A stretch of 63,773 nucleotides of DNA, counting the filler, from Klebsormidium nitens (Eukaryota > Plantae > Klebsormidiophyceae): NCBI GenBank assembly GCA_000708835.1. It is 8 parts of 8 records of this genome, joined end to end, with 100 filler letters (N's around TTAATTAATTAA, not from the genome) between each part and the next. Parts side by side here need not be neighbours in the genome. Positions count along the whole stretch, not along the records: positions 4,035 to 20,430 come from DF238013.1; 7 more parts are not named here. One strand, written 5' to 3'. Below, one piece after another: positions 4,035-20,430 of this stretch. Position 1 is the first letter of the stretch, and every line of letters starts with the position of its first letter. The position numbers and the translations under genes were made by a program. Below the pieces are notes generated by a model. It saw only the letters and a program-made list of their open reading frames with translations. It was not told the origin of the DNA and ran no database searches.

Positions 4035-4193
4035 GTGCTCCCACTCGTAGGCGTCCTGATCCAGCTGGATCTCCTCCACGGTCCAGAAATTGGCGACCGC
4101 CTTCTTGTAGAACGATCAGGTCTTGGGGTATTTGATGGGGAAGGTGCAGTACCTGTGAGGATCCGTCTCGAGGAGGGGTTCTCGTTCTGCCAT
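4035..4193 (-). pseudogene. RNR2: Ribonucleotide reductase small subunit (R2), 5' fragment with a premature stop
   Basis: Translates MAEREPLLETDPHRYCTFPIKYPKT*SFYKKAVANFWTVEEIQLDQDAYEWEH, the typical R2 N-terminus; TGA at 4116-4118 falls where a conserved Trp is expected; runs into a gap. Confidence 0.85.
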
Positions 4194-4302
4194 GTCTCAG
4201 AATGAAGCCCTCGTACCTTACAGTCTGTCCAGAATAAAATGGCACACGACGAATCTGCGTCTGAAGGTCTTCAGCAAGAGCTTAGAAGCATCCGAATGCC
4301 AC

Positions 4303-4535
4303 ATCATAGCGGAAGCATCCGAAAGCAAGTATTCAAAGAATGCGTCCGAAAACAATTTCGGGTACTGACGGCTATAGCCACATCGCAACAGAGACATCCG
4401 AAAGTCAGTATCCGAAAAATGCGTCCGAAAACATTTTCGGGTACTGACGGCTACAGCCACATCACAGCGGAAGCGCCCGAAAGCAAGTATCCCTGAAACA
4501 TTTTCGGACGCCGAAGGCTACGGGTATAACATCTT
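4303..4535 (+). repeat. About 3 tandem ~75-bp subterminal repeats rich in RYRTCCGAA motifs
   Basis: aaaca(a/t)tttcgggtactgacggcta(t/c)agccacatc at about 4351 and 4428, with a degenerate third copy at about 4496. Confidence 0.75.
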
Positions 4536-4862
4536 GGAGCGAAAGGCGGTCATCTCTCCAGAAAACAGGTCCTGACCGCCAGAGATGGAAGTCTACATGA
4601 GAGAACGGGTAAAAACTCTTCCTTACAGTCTGTCCAGAATACAAAGACACACCTGGAATCTCTGATTCTCGAGAGTATCGTGGAACGTCTCGGACGCCAG
4701 CGTCCGAAACCCCAGCTTTAGAACCTTCCAAATCGCCACGTCGTAACGACAGGTGTCCGAAAAGAGACAGCCCAGAAGCATCTCCCATTCGGACGACCGT
4801 CAGAGAGAAATCTCGCTCGGAGTATATATACCACAAAACTTCCTTTCTCACGACATTCACAG

Positions 4863-6761
4863 ATGGACGATGGGACGGATGGCTTCGAGGGGACGAAGAG
4901 GAAGCGCCCAGACATCGCTCTACGAATCCAACAGCGAAAGGGCAAAGAGACCTCCGTGGTACAGACGGGATAGAAGGCCCTCTGTCAGGACCTCGGGATC
5001 AGAGACCGGATCGAAGAGATCATCCCAGAAGTGAGTCGCATCCGAATCGAGACCTGCCTCCTGCTCAACCTGCACTTCATCCGCCTTCTGGAGGAAGGGA
5101 AGCCCATTCCCGTCATCGACCAGAACTTGGTCGGACGTGCGATGCAGTGCACATATGCAAAGAAAGCACAAGCGGACGCGGAACTCCAAGAGACATTCGA
5201 CCACCACTACCTACCTCTCTGCCCCAACCGTCCGATCAACAACTGCCTCCCTCGCATCACCAACGTACTCCTGGACCTGCGCAACCAGCTCCTCAGCAAC
5301 ATCAAGAATCACGTCGCGGTCCTCTTCCAGTCACGGCACCGGGCCTTCATGAAGCTCCTCCTCAGAGAAGCAGCCCCGGGCGTGCCTTTCTTCGAGGAAG
5401 CGGACGAGGATCTGGAGTCGTGCACCCGGCTGCTGACGACCGCCACCTTGTGGCGCCCGAACGAGAGCGTCCAAGAGCTGCTACCGGAGTATCCTCGCAT
5501 CTACGGAAGGATCCCAGAAGCTGCGATCGAGTGCCTACAAGATCTGGTCGACTCAGTCAGGCCGGAAGTCGGGCCGCTGCCTGCGGCGTCCCAGAGCAGA
5601 CCTCACCTCTACGTGCCCTGGATGAGGATCATCAGCGAGGAGTCCTCGGACCGACAGCTGCGATCATTCTCCCTCGTGCCTCACGCCTCCTTCTCTGCAC
5701 CTTTCATCGCTATCACTCCTACAACGTGGCCCGAGCTGCAACCAAAGAGCGGCAAGAGAAAGGCTCCGGGAGAGCTCCGCGATGCTTTTCCCTCCATCGG
5801 ACGGCTGGAGAGCGGTGGGAAGACCTTCGCAGACCGGATCACCACGGACGGAGTGTCCGCGAGCGTGTATTTCCCGGTGGAGAAGAGGACGCCCCCTCCG
5901 GAGGACAGAATGGTCCACATCCACCCCAAACAGCGCGTGGTGGGATTAGACCCAGGAAAGCATCCTGACTTCCTCACCGGCATCGCCGTGACCGGCGACT
6001 GGGATGGCATCTCGCATCAGGAGGAGGTCATCGGCCTGGGGACCCGGGACTTCTACCACCGAGCGGGATTCAAGAATCGGACGTTCCTCATGCACGCCTG
6101 GATGTCCAGAGACCTGGATGTGGCAGCCTTCAACAAGGATGCTCCTTCGGGGAACACCGTGAGTCTGGAGAAGTTCGGGAAGAGGGTGACCTTCGTCTCT
6201 GCGAACCTGTACTGTCTGGTACGCTTCCACACCGCGAGGAGGGTCCGAAAGCTGAGACGGCGAGTGACGATCAAGAAACAGATCGAGGTGGACAGAGCCT
6301 GCAAGAAAATCACGGCAGGGAAGAAAACCGTGGTGGCTTTCGGAGCAGCACAGGTGGATGCAGGCAGGACCAAGAGGCAGTGTGGGCCATGCGAGTCGGT
6401 GAAGAGACGACTCAGCAGCCACCACAAGGCGACGGTGGTCTTGATTGACGAGTTTAGGACGAGCCAGGTGTGCAGCACGTGCCACTCGGACGTCAACAAG
6501 TTCGCGGTGCTCAAGAGGCAGCGGGTGATGGAGGATGGACTCCCGACGGTGACCGAAGTAGGGCGTCGCGAGGACGAGGACGGAGGAGGGAGGACGAGCT
6601 ACAAGACGTGCCACAACGTGCGAGCGTGTACTAACCCGCTCTGTCGCATGGTGTGGAATAGAGACGTCAACGCAGCTCGTAGCATAGCTTGGATTTGTAT
6701 GAGCATAGCGAGAGGCGAGGGCAGGCCGGCAGAGTTCACGAGAGCAGGAGTCTGGGGCTGA
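4863..6761 (+). pseudogene. Fanzor (Fanzor1/TnpB-like RNA-guided RuvC nuclease), ~632 codons, with one in-frame TAG at 4971-4973
   Basis: RuvC-I VVGLDPG, RuvC-II LIDEFRTS, Zn finger CSTC...CTNPLC and RuvC-III WNRDVNAA. The upstream in-frame ATG at 4863 gives MDDGTDGFEGTKRKRP...KETSVVQTG*KALC, which aligns with the family-B N-terminus (ECTVVKTSLNSFC). Confidence 0.9.
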
Positions 6762-6897
6762 CAGATAGATAGTTCAAAGACATAGCTGCCTAGAAACGAG
6801 TTCATCTAGGCACCTCGGTGAGAACCCGAGATACGGCTGAGTACTATGGCGAGTGTGCCATTTTACTCTGAACAGACTGTATACGCGGTTTCGGACG
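6762..6897 (+). ncRNA. Predicted omegaRNA of Fanzor A (scaffold to the element end plus flank-derived guide TACGCGGTTTCGGACG); boundaries approximate
   Basis: Hairpins TGCCTAGA/TCTAGGCA (6787-6812), CTCGG/CCGAG (6814-6830) and ATGGC/GCCAT (6846-6861) lie between the stop and the right end; the last 85 nt are conserved in the mini-element at 17586-17670. Confidence 0.7.
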
Positions 6898-6968
6898 CGA
6901 GCCGACCGTTTGGACGCCCCGCGAGAACAAGTCTGTGGAAGCCCTTTCGGACGCCACTTTCGGGCGTC

Positions 6969-8048
6969 TCAGGCTTCGCCGTGGTAGATGTCGTCTACCA
7001 ACTGATAGTCCACCTTTTTCACTCTATATCTCCTCTTGAATTCCTCGATGAGTCTCTCCCGCAAGTACTTCTCGTTGGCGCTCGTCATGTGCCCGAAATC
7101 CTTGTGCGTCGTCCGGATCAATTGCGCGAATTCCAAGCGAGAGTCTCCCTTTCGGGCGGCGAAGCCAAAATCGATCAATAGAACTCGTCCGATATATTTC
7201 GTGCCCGGTCTGTACTTGAATGCTATGTTCTCCCAGTGGAGATCGCCGTGAGCGAGTCGCTTCTTCTGCATCTTGTCGATGAATGATATGAGGACTTTGA
7301 GCATGACGTCTAGCTCCCACCTCTTGCGATCCCGTCGCAGCCACGATGACAGCGTGGAATCCACCTGTTGCATGAGGACGACCGACACTTTCTTCTGCTT
7401 ACGGCCGTGCTTGATCTCGTCGAGCTCGAGTCCGAACGCTCGCGGCGCCAACCCATTGCGCCAGAATTCGTTCTGCATGTCCATCTCCACTCTATCTCGT
7501 GCTCTGTCGAGTTTCTTGGAGATCTTTGCGACGCGCCTCTGGCCGGTCTTCCTGTTTCGGACGAGGATCACCGACCCACTCGCCCCCTCGCCCAAGTGCT
7601 TCACGAAAGCCCACTTCTTCCAAAGGTTCATCGCAAAGCACCTCTCCGCCGCCAGGCACGGGGCCATGCTGCCCGTACCTTTCTGACCGTCCATAGCTTT
7701 CTTCCATTCGGTGACGGAGAACCCTCCCTCGAATAAGTCGCGCCCCATCTTCTGAGCACCGTCGACCCCGGCTTCGCACAGATTCTGCTTAACGCCGAGC
7801 TCCGCGAGTCCCTCTCCCGTGATCCAGTTCACCTTCTTCCCAGTCTTAAGCACGGCCGGCTTCAAGGCTTTCCTTGGTCTCCTCTCGCGCCGGGTCCTCC
7901 GTCTCCTCGGGACTTCGAGTCTCTTACGGTGCACTCTACAGTATCGATAGTCGCCCGACCCGCAGGCCGCCTTGTTCTTGCACCGCGCACCGTTCTTGGT
8001 CGGAGCTATGCAGCGTCCGCACGCCTTTTTCTTACGAGCTCGCGCCAT
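6969..8048 (-). CDS. Viral-type Ser/Thr protein kinase with an N-terminal Cys/His motif and an Arg-rich tract
   Basis: LGEGASGSV, VAK, HGDLHWENI and LIDFGFA kinase motifs; N-terminal CIAPTKNGARC...CRVH; intronless. Confidence 0.85.
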   Translation of the reverse strand: MARARKKKACGRCIAPTKNGARCKNKAACGSGDYRYCRVHRKRLEVPRRRRTRRERRPRKALKPAVLKTGKKVNWITGEGLAELGVKQNLCEAGVDGAQKMGRDLFEGGFSVTEWKKAMDGQKGTGSMAPCLAAERCFAMNLWKKWAFVKHLGEGASGSVILVRNRKTGQRRVAKISKKLDRARDRVEMDMQNEFWRNGLAPRAFGLELDEIKHGRKQKKVSVVLMQQVDSTLSSWLRRDRKRWELDVMLKVLISFIDKMQKKRLAHGDLHWENIAFKYRPGTKYIGRVLLIDFGFAARKGDSRLEFAQLIRTTHKDFGHMTSANEKYLRERLIEEFKRRYRVKKVDYQLVDDIYHGEA

Positions 8049-8099
8049 GTATCTCTCGTATGATTGAACGCGATATATTTTTCGTCGAAGCAAAGAGAT

Positions 8100-8786
8100 A
8101 TGATGCACTTCATAACTTTCGGTACGCATGGGATCTACAATAATTTCGCACGTCAGCTGGCCAAGAGCGCGCTAGCCGCCGGCTTCGACACCGCGACGGT
8201 CTACGACGAGACGGATCTAGACCCCGCGTTCCGGGAATCTCACAGGGACGTGCTCGCTCTCCCGCGTGGCTTCGGAGCGTGGTGCTGGAAGAGCTATTGC
8301 ATACTTAAGCGTCTGAGTGAGTTGGAGGAAGGAGACGTCGTGACTTACTGCGACTCTCTGTACGTGTTCACGAGGGACTTTAGGGAGGCCGCGGAGGACT
8401 GGCTGACGACCCGAAACCTGGTCTTGTTCGAGAACAAGCCTTCGGAGCCGAGCTACAAGGAGAGACACTGGACCAAGTACGACGCCTTCCGCATCTTGGG
8501 TGCAGACCCCGAGGTACACGGAGAGACGCCGCAATGCTGGGGCGGATTCCTTCTGTTACGCAAGACTCCAGAGACCGTGAGATTCATCCAGGAGTGGTAC
8601 GATAGATGTGCCGACGTACGCCTGATGAACGACGAGCGAAGCGTGCTAGGAGAAGAGCTTCCGAGCTTTATCTCGCATAGAGAGGACCAATCAAATTTAT
8701 CATTGATAAGCAAAGTCACAAAAATCGGATATCCTTTCTTGCATTTCCCCGCGGATCTCATGTATAATGTCAGGATGGGCAAGTAA
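8100..8786 (+). CDS. Putative glycosyltransferase (NCLDV-type)
   Basis: RGFGAWCWK, YCDS and HREDQS motifs typical of viral GT-like proteins; intronless. Confidence 0.6.
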   Translation: MMHFITFGTHGIYNNFARQLAKSALAAGFDTATVYDETDLDPAFRESHRDVLALPRGFGAWCWKSYCILKRLSELEEGDVVTYCDSLYVFTRDFREAAEDWLTTRNLVLFENKPSEPSYKERHWTKYDAFRILGADPEVHGETPQCWGGFLLLRKTPETVRFIQEWYDRCADVRLMNDERSVLGEELPSFISHREDQSNLSLISKVTKIGYPFLHFPADLMYNVRMGK

Positions 8787-8787
8787 C

Positions 8788-11124
8788 CTATTGTACGTAA
8801 ACCCATCTATAGCCGGCTGCCAGGATACTCGTGTCGCGTAGTGCTTTTCTCAAACTGCTGTTGTTTCTCAAGCCGTGCTGCCGAACAGCCTCCAACACGG
8901 ATGAATATGTACCGCTGATCTGGCCGGTCATGACGTCTATCCTGTGAACCGGACGAGTGCGGTCTCTATTCTGAGCCTGCTCAGCCGTCGTCGCGAATCG
9001 CAGGTTTTCTAGGCGATTATTCGACGGCTGCCGATCGATGTGATCGACGCTCGTGTGGTGGTCACTCGGAGGACTCCCGAGGAACGTGTACGCCACCAGC
9101 CCGTGCACCGGTAAATTTCTACCACCTCTTATTCCCACATACATGTAGGAGTTTATACGCTTTCCGTACCAGCGCCTGCCAGTTGCACTCTGCACGCGGC
9201 CCGATGTACTGACGAAAATGTTCCTCAACGCAGTGCCCTTGTATACGGCGGGCTTCCAGATTTCTCCGTCCATTGTAGCCTGTTGTCTGAGGTAGTCCTG
9301 ATCGATCTGAAAACGAAAGCCACTCTGCATCCCGCCCCCGCTTTTCATGATTCGCTTCAGTTTGTCCTCCCCCACTCCAGTGGCTCTAGCAGCTTCTGCG
9401 ATGCTCGTGTATACCGAAGTGAGACCCGTGGAAACGTCCTCCGTTGACACGGGGATGGATGTGTGGGACGTCCAACCTTTCTTGGCGTCTGGGTTGTCTA
9501 AAGCAGTCTTCGCCACGTGGTCGGCCACGCTCAGCTCTTGGAGGTTTTGCCAAGAGTCATCCGGTTCGGTGCCCTCGGGATGAGGTACGATGTGGTCGCA
9601 GACCATACCGGGCCCGATTGGACGTCCCAGCTTCACTTCCAGGTTGAAACGGTGCCGTTGATAATACTTCGTTTCGCCCACCCCGACCACCCAGTATTTA
9701 CAGNNNNNNNNNNNNNNNNNNNNNNNNNNNNNNNNNNNNNNNNNNNNNNNNNNNNNNNNNNNNNNNNNNNNNNNNNNNNNNNNNNNNNNNNNNNNNNNNN
9801 NNNNNNNNNNNNNNNNNNNNNNNNNNNNNNNNNNNNNNNNNNNNNNNNNNNNNNNNNNNNNNNNNNNNNNNNNNNNNNNNNNNNNNNNNNNNNNNNNNNN
9901 NNNNNNNNNNNNNNNNNNNNNNNNNNNNNNNNNNNNNNNNNNNNNNNNNNNNNNNNNNNNNNNNNNNNNNNNNNNNNNNNNNNNNNNNNNNNNNNNNNNN
10001 NNNNNNNNNNNNNNNNNNNNNNNNNNNNNNNNNNNNNNNNNNNNNNNNNNNNNNNNNNNNNNNNNNNNNNNNNNNNNNNNNNNNNNNNNNNNNNNNNNNN
10101 NNNNNNNNNNNNNNNNNNNNNNNNNNNNNNNNNNNNNNNNNNNNNNNNNNNNNNNNNNNNNNNNNNNNNNNNNNNNNNNNNNNNNNNNNNNNNNNNNNNN
10201 NNNNNNNNNNNNNNNNNNNNNNNNNNNNNNNNNNNNNNNNNNNNNNNNNNNNNNNNNNNNNNNNNNNNNNNNNNNNNNNNNNNNNNNNNNNNNNNNNNNN
10301 NNNNNNNNNNNNNNNNNNNNNNNNNNNNNNNNNNNNNNNNNNNNNNNNNNNNNNNNNNNNNNNNNNNNNNNNNNNNNNNNNNNNNNNNNNNNNNNNNNNN
10401 NNNNNNNNNNNNNNNNNNNNNNNNNNNNNNNNNNNNNNNNNNNNNNNNNNNNNNNNNNNNNNNNNNNNNNNNNNNNNNNNNNNNNNNNNNNNNNNNNNNN
10501 NNNNNNNNNNNNNNNNNNNNNNNNNNNNNNNNNNNNNNNNNNNNNNNNNNNNNNNNNNNNNNNNNNNNNNNNNNNNNNNNNNNNNTCTGAACAGACTGTA
10601 TTGTGACGGCAGCCTTTGAGGACCTGTCCTGCCTTGGCCGAGAAAACCTGCCCATCCGGTCGGCCATAGTAATCCGTCATCACCGGATGCGGCTTCCAGT
10701 CTTCGGACGGGTCAGGATGAAACAGTGCCGCTTGCGGGGGACGATCCAGAAGCCTCTTCACGCGTCGTTCTTCCTTTGACACTTCACGCAAGTTAGCCCA
10801 AGAGTCGTCGGGCTCCTCCTCGCGAGCATCTCTCTTCTCCACTATCCTGTCGCAGATCATCCCGGGTCCGAGCAGTCGACCGAGCTTGCATTCTAGCACG
10901 AGGTTGTGCCTCTGATAGCTGACGGTTTTGTTTCCATGTGCTATAATCAAGACCCAATCGATCGTTTTCTGCGGAGAACCTTTCACACACCGCCCGGATT
11001 TTGCCGAATAGATCTTTCCATCCTCGCGCGAATAGAGGTGTGTGAAAGTGGGATGAGACTTCCACCCCTCGTCCTCTGGGGGTGCCTTCAGTTCCCTCCC
11101 TTCGAGTTTGCGCTTACCCAGCAT
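8788..11124 (-). pseudogene. Multi-domain NUMOD4/HNH homing endonuclease (~478 aa when repaired), interrupted by a family-A element
   Basis: Repeated W(K)xHP...YxRxDG..S modules, VDHIDRQPSNNRLENLRFAT (HNH) and HTH-like SIAEAARATG. Removing 9701-10598 and one TA restores LKGCRHNKYWVV in frame. Confidence 0.85.
9701..10598 (+). mobile_element. Family-A TIR element, mostly unassembled (N gap)
   Basis: The left gap edge reads TTA|CAG and the right edge reads TCTGAACAGACTG|TA, matching both family-A ends with a TA duplication; length depends on the gap estimate. Confidence 0.8.
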
Positions 11125-11213
11125 TATGTACAGACTCGTAATATATCTATCGTGCATCGACCGCGTGCCCTATATAGCCGCAGGAACCTGCCTGTACCAC
11201 TCGAGCCGCGCGC

Positions 11214-11306
11214 GTCCTCAGCCTAGTAAGCAAGACGAACGGTCTAGGATATCCTTTCTTGCATTTCCCCGCGTATCTCATGTATAACGTCAGGATGGGC
11301 AAGTAA
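11214..11306 (+). pseudogene. Displaced original 3' end of the glycosyltransferase gene
   Basis: Encodes LSLVSKTNGLGYPFLHFPAYLMYNVRMGK* versus LSLISKVTKIGYPFLHFPADLMYNVRMGK* at the gene end; 11247-11306 matches 8727-8786 at 58/60 nt. Confidence 0.85.
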
Positions 11307-11307
11307 T

Positions 11308-11535
11308 CTACACATGAAAGACCAAGGGAAGCCACCAAGGCCCCGTGCATAGCATCATCACCACTATCACCCCTATGAGCAGACCCGTTCCCCACTTCTC
11401 GACTCTTTTGCCTCTCGCCGCAACGGTCGCTTTCGAGGACCTGCTCATGTCCCAACCCACGGCCGTCAACACGATTCCTGTGAGTACGAGCAAGGTCACT
11501 ACTGCGATGGCAGCAAACTCCACCGTACGGTCCAT
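11308..11535 (-). CDS. Small two-transmembrane hypothetical protein
   Basis: 75-aa ATG ORF with two hydrophobic segments, tightly packed among virus-like genes. Confidence 0.55.
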   Translation of the reverse strand: MDRTVEFAAIAVVTLLVLTGIVLTAVGWDMSRSSKATVAARGKRVEKWGTGLLIGVIVVMMLCTGPWWLPLVFHV

Positions 11536-11596
11536 GATATGTATATACTACTTTTGAACAGGAAATAAAATGTTTAACACCTGATATGTGTGTGCA

Positions 11597-12217
11597 ATGA
11601 ACGACTACACGCTTCTCATCCCTGGATTGGGTTCCACGGAGACGGCTATAGAATCGATCAGAGATATGCTACGGGAGAAGTGCACAGGAATGATCGAGGT
11701 CTTTGACTACGACTCGAGAGGTATGTGGGATCTCGGCGACGTTTTGCGTAATAGACTATTCACCAGCACAAAGACGGACAGGTTGACGAGGCTGCTGACC
11801 AAGCTCTCCGAAATCACGAGCCTGCCTTTGGACGTCCGCGTGCACATCATCGCACACTCACATGGGGCTCTCTTGCTACACAAGGCTCTCATGACGCTGT
11901 CAATCTCGGCTCGACACCAGCTTCAACTGCAAAACGTCATGGTGGACGCATACGGACCTGCGAAGCTGATCCCTGCCTCGTGCGAGCATTACGCGCTCCG
12001 GGGCGCGACCAATCATTTCCACGAGAAGGATTGGATTCTGAGGTTACATGGAAGGTTGCGGAGGACCGACGAATCCGAATTCGACCACAGGTCTTCCGAT
12101 GGGACCGTCTTTCATATCAAGATGACTAAAGATCCGCGTTACGCTTCCGGCAGAGATGCACACCAATCCTACTACGACGAGAGCATCTGGGACGCCATGG
12201 GCTCTTGCAAGATCTGA
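11597..12217 (+). CDS. Alpha/beta-hydrolase (lipase-like)
   Basis: LLIPGLG oxyanion-like loop and HIIAHSHG nucleophile elbow. Confidence 0.65.
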   Translation: MNDYTLLIPGLGSTETAIESIRDMLREKCTGMIEVFDYDSRGMWDLGDVLRNRLFTSTKTDRLTRLLTKLSEITSLPLDVRVHIIAHSHGALLLHKALMTLSISARHQLQLQNVMVDAYGPAKLIPASCEHYALRGATNHFHEKDWILRLHGRLRRTDESEFDHRSSDGTVFHIKMTKDPRYASGRDAHQSYYDESIWDAMGSCKI

Positions 12218-12264
12218 GGGTGGGCAGAGCCCCAAAATAAAATCTTTCTATATAGCAAGAACGC

Positions 12265-12681
12265 ATGTCTAACATCACGATCGCTCCGGGGAGTCGTGCA
12301 TACGTAAAGGATAACGACTTATTCGGAACCGTGACGCGTACCAATCTCTTAGGCCTGTCAAACACTCCGGTTATTCAGCTGGACGATGGGAAGAGCCAAG
12401 CATACATCGGACCACTGAGGAAGAACGTGGTGGATGCCGAGAAGAAGGTAGATTTCGATGGACAGAGCGTTTCGGTGCCACTGGATGTGTTTGGCGTGGG
12501 CAGAGACCAACTGACCGCGTTCGGGGTCTCGGCGGAGAAGCAGAACCAGATGTTCCAGAAGTGGAGAACACTGCCTAAGAATCAGCAAGAGGCTTACACT
12601 CAAAGCTGGGACTCCCTGGACAAGAACGATTCTACCGCTCTGCAGGGGTTCCTTCAAGGGATGATAGATGCTCTCTCCTAA
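12265..12681 (+). CDS. Hypothetical viral-type protein
   Basis: 138-aa ATG ORF preceded by an AAAATAAAAT...TATATA AT-rich stretch; no recognised domain. Confidence 0.6.
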   Translation: MSNITIAPGSRAYVKDNDLFGTVTRTNLLGLSNTPVIQLDDGKSQAYIGPLRKNVVDAEKKVDFDGQSVSVPLDVFGVGRDQLTAFGVSAEKQNQMFQKWRTLPKNQQEAYTQSWDSLDKNDSTALQGFLQGMIDALS

Positions 12682-12686
12682 TTCAT

Positions 12687-13277
12687 CTAGCTCATCTTCG
12701 AGGCTACTACAGCTGCAGCTGCTCGCAGCACCTCCCGTGCACTCTGACGACCATCTATGCGGTACACCTCGTCGAAGTGAGCTTCCTCGCTGGAGAGGAA
12801 GTCGTGATACTTCGCCTCCAACTTCTTCAAATAGGCCAGAGTGAGCGGCGTCTCCGCCTCTCTCCCCCTCTTGCGTGCGCGTTCGAAGCAGACCTCAGCT
12901 GGAGTGTCCACCCATATGCAGATCTTGGGCACCTCCAGCTGCTGCGTGCTCCGGTCATATAGCTGCCTGAAAAGGGCCCATTCCTCAGGGTCCAGAGTTC
13001 CGTCCTCGTGCAGGAGCTCTCCAAAGACGAACCTGCACGAGGCGGGTGATCTCTCTATGAAGCTGAGTCCGGTGCGCTTGGGCATAGACATGAAGCTGCA
13101 GAGGACCTTAGTCTGTAGTGCAAAAGCCCATCTCCTTGGGTCTTCATAAAATCTACGCAAGATAGGTGCCCACTCATCCACGGGTTCCAGCTCGATAGGG
13201 CATTCGAAGAGTCGACCCAGACCGTCTATGAGAGAACTCTTGCCACTGCCTATCGAGCCTTCGACCGAGATATTCAT
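12687..13277 (-). CDS. Deoxynucleoside kinase
   Basis: ISVEGSIGSGKS P-loop, EPVDEW, ERS and RKRGREAE lid motif; start in an AAAAATG context. Confidence 0.9.
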   Translation of the reverse strand: MNISVEGSIGSGKSSLIDGLGRLFECPIELEPVDEWAPILRRFYEDPRRWAFALQTKVLCSFMSMPKRTGLSFIERSPASCRFVFGELLHEDGTLDPEEWALFRQLYDRSTQQLEVPKICIWVDTPAEVCFERARKRGREAETPLTLAYLKKLEAKYHDFLSSEEAHFDEVYRIDGRQSAREVLRAAAAVVASKMS

Positions 13278-13387
13278 TTTTGCGATCTCTGTTGTCCGAG
13301 TCGTGCCACACGCCCCTCTTCTTATATAGACGGCCGCTTTTTCGGACGCTGCTCCCGGGTCCGCGTCCACGACTGCGTATTCTTCGC

Positions 13388-14122
13388 TACCAGGCACGCG
13401 ACTTTCCCGTCTTTACTTCCACGCGTGCCACTTGTCGAGACAAGTGTTGACAGTATCCACGAAAACATGGCCTCACATGGCCACGGTGCCACTTGTTCGA
13501 CGATAATCTAATTCTCTCTTCTTATTGGATAGAAAGCAGCAAAAGCTGGAGACATGTGCACATGTGATTGGCTTCTACGTGACGAATGGACCACCGATTT
13601 GTGAGGAAAAGGCGGGAACGAGTGCGTGGGTGCTTGACTGGCGTTGACTTCGACGGTATCACGGATATCAACCATTAGCGGGAAATACTACGTCATAATA
13701 TCCAAGTACAAGATTACCAGTACCAATATTAGTACGGCACCCATCGTTTTGTCATAGCTGCACTCGAAGTACATGTCAGCAACCGAAAAACCGCATGCTA
13801 CCAGGCACGCTACTTTTCCCGTGTTTATTTCCATGTGTCCATTTGCCCATGTGTCCAGACGGTTGTCCGTACTCCCAGAAACTTATCTGGCTTACATGCA
13901 TGCGTTCAGACGATATTCCGTACTCCCGAGAACTTATCTGAACTCACATGGCTTCGGTGCCACCTGCTCGACGGATAGTTCTTCTTATTGGACGACTGGA
14001 CCCGATCGCGAGAAAAGAATGCGGGAACAGGCGCGTAGGATATGGAAATTTTACGTCATAATATCCAAGTACGGTGCCCATTGTTTCGTCATAGATTGCA
14101 CCTGAAGTACATGTCAGCAACC
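13388..14122 (+). repeat. Degenerate tandem duplication (13388-13784 and 13799-14122)
   Basis: Shared blocks taccaggcacgc, cggtgccac.tg.tcgacg, ttcttattgga, tacgtcataatatccaagtac and gaagtacatgtcagcaacc. Confidence 0.8.
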
Positions 14123-15409
14123 CTAATTGATCCGTATATTATATCAGAAAAATATATTCGCTCGGCAGTGTCTAAAATTCTCTTTCGTATACCATAAGTC
14201 CGAGGTAGTGGTAACCGCCGCTGACGAGCAGGCTGAGTCACAACTGAGAATGATCATTCGCACTTTTTCACGTGCATATTTCGGTTTCGGGCGCGATAGC
14301 TACCCAAGGCGCGTTGCCTATAGTCTTTTCGGCTGCCCCTTCCGTTTCCACTTTGACGGTACCACATACCATATCGAGCAAGAGCTCAAACCTCACTGCT
14401 TCCTTCAGCATCGCTCACGCCTCCACGCCTCCTGAAAAGCGCTCACCTGGCTGACGGAGGAGCATGCCATTATGGCATCCGGCTTTTCGGCAGCAGACGA
14501 TGCGGGGTGAGAATCCTGGCCGAGCTTTAGCGCACATTGGGCTGGGTTCCTTCTTTCTGTGCAATCCTAATCGCCGTGCATCTACTGTGTGCTAGACCTT
14601 TGCAAGAGAGGTCACCAAATCCAGACCTATGTAGGCAGCCTAGAATTGCATTCATTAGGGTGGTGGGTTTTAAGAATTGCATCCAGTAGGATGGTGGAGT
14701 CCGGAAGTCAGACTGATTCTTACGTTCAAAAAGTTTCACCTTGGGTTTTTCTCAAACAACCCATCAATCTATTAGAGCAGATTCAGATTGCCTACAATCA
14801 GGATATTTCATTCCATAGGCTCTAAACCTGTACGCTTGATCTGAGCAGAATCGCAGAGTAGCAGAGGTAAGGGTTCCTTTTCCCTACTTTCTGCTTGGAT
14901 TTCTTCCTAGAAACTCATCAAAGCTGCAGAGTGGTGGTGAAGTCTGATACTTTACATGTAGGGTTGCTTCCTGATACCTCAGGTTTCTGCTTGGATAAAC
15001 CCTACTTTTTGCACATTTATAGGAGATGTGAAGCTGCACTTGCGATTCAGCACAGTGAGGCTCCTGGAGCGATCAACGACGCGTTTGTGGGTTTCCTTCT
15101 CGGGCAGCTGGAGTCGGCCAGACAGGCAGCCGAGAAGGCTAATGATGAGAACAGCCGGTTGCGCATTCAGTTGGAATTGTGCAACGAGGAAATCAAAAGG
15201 CTGATGAGCAGCGGGGGCTCTGGTCATCCTGGCCTGGAGCTTCCTAATTCTAGCATTCACACTTCGCATTCGAGCTAGAGAAGATCAGCACTAACCGCGA
15301 GGTAAGCTAGCAGTATGTGCCAACCTGCTGCTGCAGCACGATCAATTTCGGACGGCGTTCCGACTCGCCGATCAGGGCAAACCTCTTGTTGTAGAAGGTG
15401 CAGCCTTAG

Positions 15410-16095
15410 AGAGGTTTACGTGGAGCTTTGATAGTTGAGACCACAGAACCGGTGTTTGAATAGTGGGCTGAGTTGAGGTGTGACTTAGTCTGTAACTTAG
15501 TTGTACTTGTACTGAGGTTTACGTGGAGGTTTGGTTGTTGCAGATCACGGATGTAAGACTGAACCGGTGCTTATTACCAGTTTCGCCCAAACTGTCGCCT
15601 CTTTGACGTAACGCAGGTGACGAATAGGAGCGAGAAATGATAATAATACCAGAGTTGACTGGCTTTCCTCTGGCCGCCAGGGCTGGCCTGGTACCAGAAG
15701 AAACTTTTCGTTTTTAGGACATCACTTGCTGTGACTCCCTAGCTATACCGTAGACCTTCGGCCCATAACGAGTACACCTGCGGAACACCTCGCGAACTGA
15801 ATCACTGAGGTCCCATCGGAGGGACTGAGATGGTGCCTTTTGAATGAAGGTCTCTATCCGTTTTGCGACGGGGTATTCTAGGAGCAAGGGTCCAAGGTCA
15901 GCGAAGCCCAGTGATGCAACATGTGTTAGCATACTATCCCTTAAGGAAGAAAGTTAGTCCATACAAACGCGGTCAAACGCACTCAGAATTTCCAAGCGTT
16001 ACGTTCGAAGTGCGACACTCTGGACGAAAAGGGTAATAAATAGCTGGGCTGAGAGTCAAAGTGTAATTTAGTTTGTAACTTAGTTGTAAGATGCG
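15410..16095 (+). repeat. Two ~105-bp tandem units; the second is split by the family-B mini-element
   Basis: gaggtttacgtggag...gaaccggtg...atag.tgggctgag...tgtaacttagttgta occurs twice. Confidence 0.75.
15574..16036 (-). mobile_element. Family-B non-autonomous TIR mini-element with an omegaRNA-like end and a 72-aa ORF (15714-15932)
   Basis: Imperfect 16-bp TIRs TTACCAGTTTCGCCCA / TTACCCTTTTCGTCCA; TA duplications at 15572-73 and 16037-38 in a T-TA-A context; the first 26 nt match the Fanzor-B end (55709) with 1 mismatch. Confidence 0.8.
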
Positions 16096-16275
16096 GGTTG
16101 GGTCCGCGCAACTTACAGTGGTTCTGTGTCTGTACAAAGAGGATAGTCTGATAGGATGTATCCATATGCTCGTCAATAGAATCCGCTCATCTACAGATAA
16201 CCATACAAACTAGTTTAGGATCCCACAAACACTAAGCTGAATGTTTGTGTGTAGATAGTCTGGGTGGGGCTTCCC

Positions 16276-17544
16276 TTAAAACAGTATCGTTTCGCCGCCA
16301 CAATGTGCTTCGAACAATGGTCCTATCCACACTGCATGCCTGCTTCTAGGTCCAGTTGTCGAGCTGGTCGATGTTTTCGAAGATGATGAGCTCGATTTAG
16401 TCGTCACCGTCGAGCCAGAGCTGGTTCGCAAAGAGCCTCCGCTCTGCGATGTGGGTGGACTCGGACCTCTAAAGTAATCTGGGTGATTACCCCCCCTATC
16501 ATGCGTGAATGTATACTCTTCGAGTCGGAAGCCGTGCTCTTGCAACGGCTTTAAGTCTTGGTAATCCCTGTTCTCTAATCGACGGTATGCGGGTACATCG
16601 TCTACTGGCACTTTTGCAAGTCGCCACATCAACTTCTGCAGATATTTTCGTTCTGCCTCCCGTCTGAAGGTTTCGACATAATGTGGATCTAAAAGTTCGG
16701 ACCCCCTCCTTTCCCGTCTGACTCCAGTCAACCTCGATGCAACATTTCGTAAATCTCTGAGCTGTTGTTGCCTCGCTGGATCTACGCCGTCCAACATGTT
16801 ATCCCGGAGTTGAGCCGTCCTGACCGTTCGGCTCTTTTGGTCATCGCGCAACAAGCATGATTCTACGTAGAATTCGTTGTCACCCCAATCTCGCTGCAGA
16901 TGCTCCTTCTTGTCTGGAACTTTCCTCTTATCCCCTCTGTCGTACACGCGACCATCGCCGTACAGCCGCTTGCAAGCGAAATTTTTCGCATTCCTTCTCG
17001 TCAACCACTCCATCTGCTCCCTCGGTTCCTGCGGCATGAGCATGTTCACCGATCTCTCGTCGTGTTTGGCCGGAATTTCCTGACCGCCATACCGAGGATT
17101 CCCTCTAAATCTGCGGCCTGTGCCCGCCCACGGCGAATGATCTCCGCAATGTGCTCTATGGAAGCGATGACGTGGCCGATCGCTCGCGAGATCCTTTATC
17201 AAGGCGCTCCTGTCTTTGGCGCTCAGGGATAACAGGGGGGGATAGTAACGACTCACCCTTCCGAATTCTTTTTGGCACGTTTGGTCGTGTGCCCTCAGCG
17301 TTCGCCTCAGGCGTAGTCTCTCGTCCGGCGAGAGGCCTCTCACGTTGCGCTTGAATGACTCTAGATCGTCCGAGTACTCTATATCTAAGAATTGCTTTTG
17401 CTCCCGCCATCTCTCAGAGGCATCAGCGAGTCTAGGATTCCGTGCACGACTTATACGGGTATCGAGTATGGGATACCAGCCGTCATCGCTTTGGAATATC
17501 GGTGCCGTCGTGAGCGCACAGTCTATCCATTCTTGCAGAGACAT
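16276..17544 (-). CDS. Hypothetical viral-type protein (422 aa)
   Basis: Long intronless ATG ORF with an AT-rich leader and a Ser/Thr-rich tail; no recognised domain. Confidence 0.65.
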   Translation of the reverse strand: MSLQEWIDCALTTAPIFQSDDGWYPILDTRISRARNPRLADASERWREQKQFLDIEYSDDLESFKRNVRGLSPDERLRLRRTLRAHDQTCQKEFGRVSRYYPPLLSLSAKDRSALIKDLASDRPRHRFHRAHCGDHSPWAGTGRRFRGNPRYGGQEIPAKHDERSVNMLMPQEPREQMEWLTRRNAKNFACKRLYGDGRVYDRGDKRKVPDKKEHLQRDWGDNEFYVESCLLRDDQKSRTVRTAQLRDNMLDGVDPARQQQLRDLRNVASRLTGVRRERRGSELLDPHYVETFRREAERKYLQKLMWRLAKVPVDDVPAYRRLENRDYQDLKPLQEHGFRLEEYTFTHDRGGNHPDYFRGPSPPTSQSGGSLRTSSGSTVTTKSSSSSSKTSTSSTTGPRSRHAVWIGPLFEAHCGGETILF

Positions 17545-17585
17545 GGTGTAATTTAAGCTCTGATTTTTTTGCTATGCGGAGACTA

Positions 17586-17766
17586 CAGTCTGTTCAGAGT
17601 AAAATGGCACACTCGCCACAGTACTCGGCCGTATCTCGGATTCTCACCGAGATGCCTAGATGAACTCGTTGTTCGGACGCTACCTGATGCCACGTGGTTG
17701 CTACGTGGTGCCACGTGTTGAAGTCGTTCTCGGACGCTAGTGTGCCATTTTATTCTGAATAAACTG
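17586..17766 (-). mobile_element. Family-A mini-element (181 bp) retaining the 3' 85 nt of the omegaRNA scaffold
   Basis: TIRs at both ends; TA duplications at 17584-85 and 17767-68; 17586-17670 is the reverse complement of 6795-6879 with 4 substitutions. Confidence 0.92.
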
Positions 17767-17772
17767 TAAAGG

Positions 17773-18991
17773 ATGTCCAGCCCTATCCCCTATCTCTAGC
17801 CCGATCGAGAGGTTGTACAAACTGTACGAAGCGGCAGAGTACCTCTATAATAAAGGCATAGGTCACGATCGGAGAGGCGATGAAGCTACGGCGCAAACAT
17901 ACTACGAACACGTATCAACTCTCGTAGACGAAGGATTGTTGCACGCCTCTGCATTGACAGCAATTCAGATGAGTCAAGTGCACTCGAAGATCGAAGATAT
18001 GAAAAGGTGGAAGGTATATCTGAAGAAGATATTGAGACGTTCCGATCCGACTCCGAAGGGCAACCTCGTACGCTTCGAAGAGCAGATCATAGGAGAGATC
18101 ATGCAAGCAAGAGATGATACCACGTTCAAGGATATCGGAGGTATGAAGCAAGTCAAGATCGCTCTCACCGAGATGGTCATATTGCCATCCGTTCGGAGCG
18201 ACATCTACACCGGGCTCAGGACTCCCCCGAGAGGCCTTCTCCTGTTTGGTCCCCCCGGTAACGGAAAGACGTACATCGCACGCGCCGTCGCGAACGAAGT
18301 CAAGGCGACCTTCTTCTCCATAAGTGCGACCTCGTTCGCGTCCTCTCTAGTAGGCGATGCGGAGAATCTCCTTCGAGCTCTGTTTACGGTGGCTCGGAAG
18401 AAACAACCTTCTCTCATATTGATAGACGAGATAGACAGCATCCTCACGAAGAGGTGCGAGAACGACCAGGAGTATACCCGCAAGCTGAAGACCGAGTTCT
18501 TCGTTCAATTCGACGGGGTGGCGACCGACAAGAGCGACAGGGTCACGGTCATCGCGGCTACGAACCTGCCGCAGGAGCTGGACGACGCAGCCGTGCGACG
18601 ATTCGAAAAGAGGATCTACGTCGGCTTGCCGGATCTCTCGACGAGAAGGCAATTACTGGAAAAGCATCTGCAGCCAAACATTCCGAATCCTAGATCACGT
18701 AAACTACCGAACGAGCTGAATTCCAATCAAGTGCATGACATCGCCGCCCTTACGAAATGCTACTCCGCGTCCGATCTGAATTCACTGTGCAAAGAGGCAG
18801 CTATGATCCCTCTGAGAAATCAGAGAGAACATATCCTCGATATCCCCGTAGAGAAGATAGAAGCAGTGACCTTCAAAGACTTCAGAGAGGCAGCAAAGGT
18901 CATCAAACCCAGCGTCAAGAGAGAGAGCCTGGCGGCTCTCGAGAAGTGGAACGCCGACTTTGGATCCTTTCCCAACAAGGAGCTGGACTGA
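17773..18991 (+). pseudogene. Spastin/Vps4-like MIT-AAA ATPase, intronless, frameshifted at the 5' end by a 7-bp duplication
   Basis: LRTPPRGLLLFGPPGNGKT (Walker A, spastin-like), IDEID (Walker B) and AATNLPQELDDAAVRRF; removing one CCCTATC copy (17781-17794) joins ATG 17773 to the ORF. Confidence 0.85.
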
Positions 18992-19056
18992 AACCTACTT
19001 TCATTGGAACATACTGAGAATCACAAAAATTTCTCACGTAAAATTACATACTCATA

Positions 19057-19677
19057 ATGGATGCTCGTAAGGCAGAGAAGAATAGGGCCGAACTCTTGAT
19101 TGCAAAGGAAATCGCCAGGAAGCAAGAAGCCGCCAGGCAACGGGAAAGGAACGAGGCTGCCCGTCGGATGACGGAGAGGCTCCATCAGGCTGCAGAAGCA
19201 AGACGCAGGCGGGCCGCGGAAGAGGCACGTGCCCAGGCAGAAGCTGAGAGAAGACGAGCCGAGGAGGAGTATGCAGAGAGCGTTAGACAGCGGGCCGAGG
19301 AGTTTGCACGTGCCTATGCAGAAAATGCTGAGCGACGACGACGGGCGGAGGAGGCCGCGCGTGCCCAGGCAGAAGCCGACCGACCGGTCCTCACCGCTTA
19401 GGATCGTCAATGGAAGGCGGAGTTTGACGAGTTGGTCAAAGAAGCTGTGCTAAAGGGCATCCGAAGGGGCTGGCATACTGCTAATGCAGAGATAGGACGT
19501 ACGGGAGTGTCTCCTATTATCCCACTCACTCGGTCGATCCTGAAGAAGCTGCTTCTTGTCTACCATCCAGACAAATCCAAGAACCGCATCGCATTGTACC
19601 CTCCTGGGATCACGGAAGGTAATGTGCTTAGCATATCAAAGGCATTGACGGCTCGCTTACAAAGACCAAATGCCTGA
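19057..19677 (+). pseudogene. Coiled-coil protein with a J-domain-like HPDK segment, split by one in-frame TAG (19399-19401)
   Basis: An A/E/R-rich coiled coil continues in frame past the stop into PLTRSILKKLLLVYHPDK. Confidence 0.65.
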
Positions 19678-19720
19678 ATTCCATAGACTCACATTTTCAT
19701 CTCCAATAGTATACGTCCAC

Positions 19721-20035
19721 ATGTCATCCAGAGGCCTACGGGAACTCATCGAAGCTCACCCGGACAGGGTGCCTCTCATGATCTCAGGAGACGCGATGGA
19801 ACACGAGAAGAAGCTGTTGGTCCCAAAGTCTACCACACCCAGCCAGCTTTTGCTCATACTCAGGAATCGACGTATGTTGAGACCCACGGAGAAACGAGAA
19901 GCACAGTTTCTGATGGTAGGTGGTATCCTGCCGAGCTCGCATCAGACGCTTGGAGAACTGCGAGCGGCAACTTGTGCTCCAGATGAGCCCCTCAAGGCGA
20001 CCGTATGCAGGGAGAGCACGTTCGGCGGGCCGTGA
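19721..20035 (+). CDS. ATG8: Divergent ATG8/LC3-like ubiquitin-fold protein
   Basis: HPDRVPLMI, KKLLVP, FLMVGGILPSS and C-terminal ESTFG-GP with the lipidation Gly; intronless. Confidence 0.75.
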   Translation: MSSRGLRELIEAHPDRVPLMISGDAMEHEKKLLVPKSTTPSQLLLILRNRRMLRPTEKREAQFLMVGGILPSSHQTLGELRAATCAPDEPLKATVCRESTFGGP

Positions 20036-20430
20036 TCATGCTGGGGTGAACATGAGGATCTTCGGTTTGCAATCATCGTTCCTGGTCACGAGCATCTTGA
20101 ACGCCTTCTGACCGTATTGATCCACTCCGTATTCCACGCCGATCGGCTTCTGCTTCGCCGCGTCCAAGAAGGTGTATGTTATGATCTTACCAAAGTTCTT
20201 TGGCGTACTCCAGCCAGCACCCACCAGCACCTTCTCCGCGAGACCGTCCGGCAGATCCCATTGCTGGAGCTTACCCACCGAGATCGTCGTATCTGGTAAG
20301 CTTGTCATATAGCGTTTCCGTATGTAGTCATCGATCGCACTCCTGGCGGGCTCATTGAAACCCGGCTCCACAGACCAAGTGTCGCAGCGTGGAAGTACGG
20401 GTTGTGAAGCAGAAGCTTGGCTGGTTGTAA
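20036..20430 (-). CDS. Hypothetical protein, 5' end in a gap
   Basis: Reading frame is open from the gap edge to the stop; no recognised domain. Confidence 0.45.

Follow-up and report, generated by a model that had tools for sequence, protein, structure and literature searches.

A 181-bp nuclease-less mini-element of Klebsormidium nitens with the right end of a Fanzor1 transposon and the anatomy of a ghost omegaRNA locus

We analyzed a stretch of 63,773 nucleotides of Klebsormidium nitens DNA (assembly GCA_000708835.1; hereafter the window, with positions counted along its whole length) and found, within the piece at 4035-20430, a coding-free mini-element of 181 bp. Judged from its ends and its homology, we interpret it with high confidence as a deletion-derived MITE of a Klebsormidium Fanzor1 transposon, with the omegaRNA-encoding right end still in place. 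The explanation that we favor as a whole, with moderate confidence, is that the mini-element is a non-autonomous, deletion-derived MITE of a TA-inserting Fanzor1 transposon family, that it has the anatomy of a ‘ghost’ omegaRNA locus, and that it would supply a guide in trans by the mechanism proposed below. For the last part, the supply of guides in trans, analogy with related systems makes the case plausible, with the chances roughly even.

The mini-element and its transposon family

The mini-element has the following parts.

17586-17766, 181 bp: mini-element, with a TIR at both ends and TA on both sides
17584-17585, no strand assigned: TA target-site duplication on the omegaRNA (right-type) side, with the same TA/CAGT junction as in element A and the third copy
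17586-17612, minus strand: right-type TIR, identical to the right TIR of Fanzor element A
17673-17680, minus strand: GCGTCCGA motif at the homology breakpoint, replacing the 5' arm of A's first hairpin
17688-17717, no strand assigned: CACGTG-core (G-box/ABRE-like) 11-nt tandem repeat, 2.9 copies
17730-17737, minus strand: second GCGTCCGA motif, adjoining the left-type TIR
17740-17766, minus strand: left-type TIR, the AGAATAAAA variant common to A's left ends, with two terminal transitions
17767-17769, minus strand: TA duplication and the next base, 5' of the left-type end, reading TTA on the minus strand (TAM-like)

Both TIRs are of the CAGT... type, 27 nt each, read on the plus strand at 17586-17612 and on the minus strand at 17740-17766, and with the flanking TA counted (its second copy lies at 17767-17768) the arms reach 33 nt with 88% complementarity. 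A scan of the window with the family TIR pattern returned five matches where none were expected, and the ORF listing of the window places no ORF inside the mini-element, which has no coding capacity and no nuclease gene. The end asymmetry of element A is also kept: AGAATAAAA marks the left-type ends and AGAGTAAAA the right-type ends. The initial annotation had described a nuclease-less element with two TIRs and TA duplications, and with CACGTG G-box-like and further motifs in its interior; our analysis agrees on each of these points, and the element is a coding-free, TIR-bounded and TA-flanked MITE of the Fanzor family whose right end is homologous to that of element A. Judging from its two terminal transitions, the left-type TIR appears to be decaying, so that mobility may have been lost.

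Three insertions of this TIR family lie within the piece at 4035-20430, and only one of them in these 16.4 kb is a mini-element. Another is present by its tips only.

9699-10600, no strand assigned: third copy of the TIR family (TA/CAG ... TCTGAACAGACTG/TA), in an HNH-endonuclease ORF

The assembled parts of this copy are TA/CAG (9699-9703) and, at the other end, the final 13 nt with the TA (10586-10600), and its interior is an assembly gap of 882 Ns, which the ‘789-aa’ HNH ORF spans. When this copy was excised in silico with one TA left in place, a 493-codon HNH-endonuclease frame became continuous over the junction. Given that its removal restores the frame, the TIR family does transpose with duplication of TA. 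No transposase domain was found in the ORFs of the window or in the K. nitens Fanzor gene models. The low GC content at 9-11 kb is an artefact of the Ns in the 882-N gap, and a giant-virus AT-rich island at this position was rejected. Separately, two 64-nt direct repeats (95% identical; 8727-8790 and 11247-11310) bracket the HNH-endonuclease gene region, and their arrangement suggests a duplication or another mobile unit.

The remaining insertion, Fanzor element A, is the parental type of the mini-element.

4219-6881, plus strand: Fanzor element A, with TA at both borders
4219-4247: outer left TIR of A (perfect)
4624-4652: second left-type TIR of A
6853-6879: right TIR of A
4863-6761, plus strand: Fanzor1 ORF of A, with an in-frame TAG at 4971-4973, RuvC residues and a CxxC zinc-finger motif
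6762-6881, plus strand: 3' non-coding region of A, with the first hairpin at about 6787-6812 and the block common to the mini-element at 6795-6881

Compared with solved structures, the part of this ORF from 5031 to its stop codon (6759-6761) matched SpuFz1 best (8gkh; E = 7.8e-5), and Parasitella Fz1 (PpFz1) at E = 1.6e-3. The motifs IDEFRTS (RuvC-II and zinc finger) and WNRD (RuvC-III) were aligned with the Fanzor1 structures, GLDPG corresponds to RuvC-I, and the catalytic residues D307, E474 and D545 (numbered from 5031) are present together with CxxC; the score against Pfam TNB, 24.6 bits, lies just below the cut-off of 26.3. In a word-based homology search, the ORF was 89% identical to K. 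nitens KFL_007780030 and KFL_006650100 and 55-74% identical to unnamed JGI proteins, and KFL_005560180, at 92% identity, falls in the 90% cluster of A's gene call. By these sequence relationships, the ORF of A is a member of the Klebsormidium nitens Fanzor1 family, and the contig derives from K. nitens or a very close relative. In the relatives of this ORF, the reading frame begins about 57 codons before position 5031 and includes a basic KRKRP stretch, and the TAG of A stands at a Trp that is conserved in the relatives P0001, P0003 and P0004. Therefore, Fanzor A is a nonsense pseudogene with intact catalytic residues. The two left-type TIRs of A lie 405 nt apart, each after CCTTA, with 79-nt tandem repeats rich in GCGTCCGA between them (4298-4520). 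No second right end was found, and the arrangement represents either a nested insertion or a duplicated left end.

The retained right end and its predicted fold

The homology between the mini-element and element A is concentrated at one end.

17584-17670, minus strand: 87-nt block (85 nt plus TA), putative omegaRNA/fRNA scaffold, 95% identical to A's right end

The reverse complement of 17584-17670 is identical to 6795-6881 at 83 of 87 positions (95.4%; E = 9e-37), and the match continues more weakly to 99 nt at 91%. Whereas the homology covers only the TIR at the left-type end (29-30 nt), it extends over 87-99 nt at the right-type end, where about 58 nt of the 3' non-coding region beyond the TIR have been retained. 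In the Fanzor1 systems characterized so far (SpuFz1; KnFNuc of K. nitens), this region encodes the guide-RNA scaffold that runs into the right end. Given the TIRs, the TA borders, the lack of a nuclease ORF and this retained right end, the mini-element is a ghost omegaRNA locus by its anatomy: it has the inverted repeats of a Fanzor locus without the Fanzor ORF, it shares a region of scaffold length that includes the 3' inverted repeat, and a TAM-like motif lies 5' of its left end.

The predicted fold of the block consists of a closing stem, an AUCUCGG/CCGAGAU hairpin and a second hairpin spanning the inner TIR half. This second hairpin, formed by subterminal sequence and the inner TIR half, is predicted at right-type ends only, and left-type ends fold otherwise. 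All four changes between the two blocks are transitions. On the predicted fold, the first lies in a loop, the second turns C.A into U-A and makes AUCUCGG/CCGAGAU a perfect 7-bp stem, the third turns G.U into G-C, and the fourth turns A-U into G.U. The 5' arm of A's 8-bp first hairpin (around 6787-6812) is absent from the mini-element, where a GCGTCCGA motif stands in its place, and the 5' side of the scaffold would consequently fold differently there. The earlier description of this region (85 nt identical to the 3' end of Fanzor A apart from four changes, stem-keeping substitutions, including the perfected ATCTCGG/CCGAGAT stem and the change from A-U to G.U, and a missing 5' arm) was thus confirmed, with the pairing effects taken from the predicted fold. 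The further proposal that the mini-element brackets the minimal scaffold is only an assumption, because one arm of A's first hairpin is missing.

The initial annotation had also pointed to substitutions that keep or improve stems, and an argument from pairing carries no statistical weight here. Of the four changes, three fall at paired sites and all three are pair-compatible. A transition at a paired site preserves pairing in about 54% of cases, so that three compatible changes out of three are expected by chance with a probability of about 0.16. In simulations, 1.9% of random four-transition sets starting from A folded as well as the mini-element, and 33% of those starting from the mini-element folded as poorly as A. 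If the mini-element is the older state, the changes in A therefore look like neutral or random decay of a pseudogene locus. Since there are only two sequences and four changes, selection on pairing and drift are statistically inseparable. Folding z-scores were -2.6 for the mini-element, -1.0 for A and -2.4 for an unrelated left-end segment, and such modelled folding energies do not discriminate in the case of the mini-element RNA.

A search against Rfam matched no family. Searches for further copies were also negative: the TIR and scaffold patterns found nothing related in IMG/VR, a search of a phage collection gave no match, and a metagenome pattern scan gave 33 matches, all of them due to chance and none extending beyond the pattern (one, on a microbial contig labelled as human-gut metagenome, was left out). 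Protein-guided scans of viral and prokaryotic contigs found one distant Fanzor and no relatives of the mini-element; this Fanzor-like ORF (23% identity) lies at L001:3001-4692 on a 281-kb IMG/VR contig.

Possible guide supply in trans and competing explanations

In the fungal nuclease SpuFz1, the scaffold is 75 nt long and spans the 30-nt right inverted repeat, and it is followed by a guide of 14-15 nt from the flank (Saito et al. 2023, PMC10432273). KnFNuc, an intronless K. nitens Fanzor1 with five copies, uses the TAM TTA (Jiang et al. 2023, PMC10530073), and the RNA that copurifies with it originates in the 3' non-coding region next to the transposon's right end (PMC10530073). The K. nitens data at NCBI contain at least four loci that are at least 89% identical to A's Fanzor family; this family is therefore probably the published KnFNuc, although the identification is circumstantial, made by description and not by sequence. 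By analogy with both nucleases, SpuFz1 with its guide of 14-15 nt beyond the inverted repeat and KnFNuc, we infer a guide in the mini-element as follows.

17568-17583, minus strand: putative guide, in the flank directly 3' of the scaffold, inside the 39-nt spacer before the ATG of ORF 16276-17544

The flanks of A and the mini-element support a fit to the published TTA TAM. CCTTA, which contains TTA, precedes both left-type ends of A and the left-type end of the mini-element, whereas ATA and CTA occupy the mirror position at right-type ends. The chance of finding TTA before the left-type ends is about 1/16 for two elements of independently known orientation, which is a small sample; in the third copy, whose orientation is not independently fixed, one end shows TTA and the opposite end ATA. 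When a single TA is restored at the empty site of the mini-element, TTA is followed by the putative guide, which is the geometry for an RNA-guided cut of the unoccupied site. No second match of the putative guides was found inside the window.

The mechanism that we propose has two steps. In the first, a DDE-type transposase, encoded outside the window and acting in trans, would recognize the 27-29-nt TIRs; the resulting insertion at TA with duplication of the TA is shown for the family. In the second, a minus-strand transcript running across 17670 to about 17568 would then yield a scaffold of about 85 nt fused to a guide copied from the flank. The Fanzor protein of an intact paralogue would bind this RNA in trans, the neighboring copy having a nonsense codon, and the complex would cut at TTA followed by the flank, precisely the insertion site in its unoccupied state. 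Cut-and-paste excision from TA sites normally leaves footprints. Such footprints would separate the TAM from the target, and thus the homing logic of IS605 TnpB may not transfer unchanged.

The strongest competitor, which we regard as possible but clearly less probable than the favored explanation as a whole, is that the mini-element is an ordinary internal-deletion MITE: the extra 58 nt would reflect a chance breakpoint, with no guide RNA made or used, in a decaying passenger. The length of subterminal sequence is arbitrary in deletion derivatives, and the mini-element carries a 10-nt direct repeat, TAGCGTCCGA, at 17673-17682 and 17730-17739, so that the breakpoint has a repeat as in microhomology-mediated deletion. 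That all differences from A are transitions, that the left TIR is decaying, that three compatible paired-site changes arise by chance in about 16% of cases and that the neighboring Fanzor is itself a pseudogene fit this explanation as well. However, the retained block agrees in length and position with the ghost scaffold that functions with SpuFz1 (75 nt with the inverted repeat counted), conservation of the right-end block is 95% and its TIR is perfect, and TTA stands at the left flank, as the nuclease TAM requires.

The interior of the mini-element raises other possibilities. The CACGTG-core repeat lies between two GCGTCCGA motifs, and no recognizable promoter was found in the mini-element. 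In the window, the octamer GCGTCCGA has 11 occurrences where 0.74 are expected (15-fold enrichment), at 4342-4707, 6891, 6947, 13342, 17673, 17730 and 18767. Most lie in or beside TIR elements, but others precede the Fanzor ORF and the dNK gene or fall within the AAA ATPase ORF. It is a candidate protein-binding site or promoter element, and the occurrence of GCGTCCGA and an ACGT core in both the mini-element and the region upstream of the Fanzor ORF is only suggestive of a link. One could imagine the mini-element as a self-contained promoter-plus-guide cassette, transcribed on its own from GCGTCCGA and the triple G-box/ABRE-like repeat, and, as a nuclease-less MITE, hijacking Fanzor proteins made at other loci to protect or copy its own insertion site. 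We consider this unlikely; if true, the plant lineage would harbor a hyperparasite of an RNA-guided transposon, and the element would also define a natural minimal KnFNuc scaffold.

MITEs commonly supply regulatory motifs. An exapted cis-regulatory role, in which the triple repeat and GCGTCCGA would act as a promoter or enhancer for ORF 16276-17544 on the minus strand or for the AAA ATPase gene on the plus strand, appears very improbable. It draws on the 2.9 copies of the CACGTG-core repeat, on the enrichment of GCGTCCGA, which is also found upstream of the Fanzor ORF and the dNK gene, and on the position of the mini-element in a short stretch between divergently oriented ORFs, 39 nt before the ATG of ORF 16276-17544 and in the same orientation (minus). 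Yet this 422-aa ORF on the minus strand gave no Pfam family, no atlas match and no homologue, and its GC3 is only 0.55 with a weak codon-position bias, so that it may be an orphan or no gene at all; moreover, a regulatory role leaves the retention of the right-end block unexplained. Finally, although there is an assembly gap inside another family copy on the contig, a chance match or assembly artefact is of negligible probability, given the E value of 9e-37, the five TIR matches against none expected, the precise TA borders and the absence of N from the region of the mini-element.

Several features of the neighborhood were observed as well. On the other side of the mini-element, at 17756-17969, the AAA ATPase ORF has an MIT-like N-terminal stretch with no in-frame ATG before residue 53, and its frame opens at a TGA in the TIR of the mini-element. 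Excising the mini-element in silico gained no start codon when the junction was read by hand, and restoration of the ATPase start in this way was rejected; the gene may have an exon further upstream, or its 5' end may be damaged. Between 6969 and 20035, the contig carries ORFs without apparent introns at a high density (protein kinase, deoxynucleoside kinase, Vps4-like AAA ATPase, ATG8-like and HNH endonuclease), which is unusual for a streptophyte nuclear region. It may belong to an NCLDV-derived insert; such inserts have been reported for Klebsormidium flaccidum/nitens (PMC5294986). Several 23-42-nt repeats at 13386-14122, spaced 51-411 nt apart and mostly 338-411 nt, suggest local duplication.

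Returning to the favored reading of a guide-supplying ghost locus, a functional mini-element would give the green or streptophyte lineage its first noted ghost omegaRNA locus, and one much smaller than those of the fungus. For KnFNuc, a Fanzor1 that already edits human cells weakly, it suggests a natural scaffold boundary of about 85 nt. It also connects the TTA TAM with a cut-and-paste insertion that duplicates TA, a point relevant to the role of Fanzors for eukaryotic transposons. If non-functional, it is a routine MITE.

Comparison with known systems

Among the closest counterparts are the 134 ghost Spu-1 loci, which have inverted repeats and the 75-nt region without an ORF and whose RNAs work with SpuFz1 in trans (PMC10432273; PMC13434818). 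Like the mini-element, the ghost Spu-1 loci of Spizellomyces punctatus are bounded by inverted repeats, lack a Fanzor ORF and share a region containing the 3' inverted repeat with the stretch from stop codon to inverted repeat of Fanzor loci; they likewise have a conserved TAM-like motif upstream of the 5' inverted repeat and a guide derived from the flank, which is putative in the mini-element. They differ in size (about 610 bp against about 181 bp) and in the shared region, which is 75 nt there and 85-87 nt, without one parental hairpin arm, in the mini-element. In addition, they are fungal, with 134 loci and active RNAs, whereas the mini-element was seen in one copy, in a streptophyte alga.

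KnFNuc belongs to the same species or genus and the same protein class, is also intronless and multicopy, and has the TAM TTA that is found here in the flank 5' of left-type ends. Its description (PMC10530073) concerns nuclease-bearing loci only, in contrast to the nuclease-less mini-element. In bacteria, the PATEs of IS200/IS605 provide omegaRNAs that are acted on in trans by TnpB (Meers et al. 2023, 10.1101/2023.03.14.532601). They too are protein-less miniatures that keep the guide-RNA end, with nuclease and transposase encoded elsewhere, but they move by single-stranded DNA peel-and-paste with palindromic ends and leave no scar, whereas the mini-element has the TIRs and TA duplication of the cut-and-paste type.

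Tc1/mariner-derived MITEs (Stowaway-like elements, and Submariner of Pandoravirus; PMC4495683) resemble the mini-element in their TA duplication, TIRs, non-coding interior, reliance on a trans-acting transposase and probable origin through internal deletion. Unlike them, the mini-element has a parent that carries an RNA-guided nuclease instead of a transposase, and it has no sequence relation to Submariner. An assignment to the Pandoravirus Submariner MITEs was rejected, Submariner being a different family of 243 bp with TIRs of about 100 bp (PMC4495683). Ghost omegaRNAs are not new as a concept, having been described in a fungus (Saito et al. 2023, PMC10432273) and, in parallel, in bacteria; the mini-element is of value for its very small size, the lineage of its host and its clean TTA/TA geometry.
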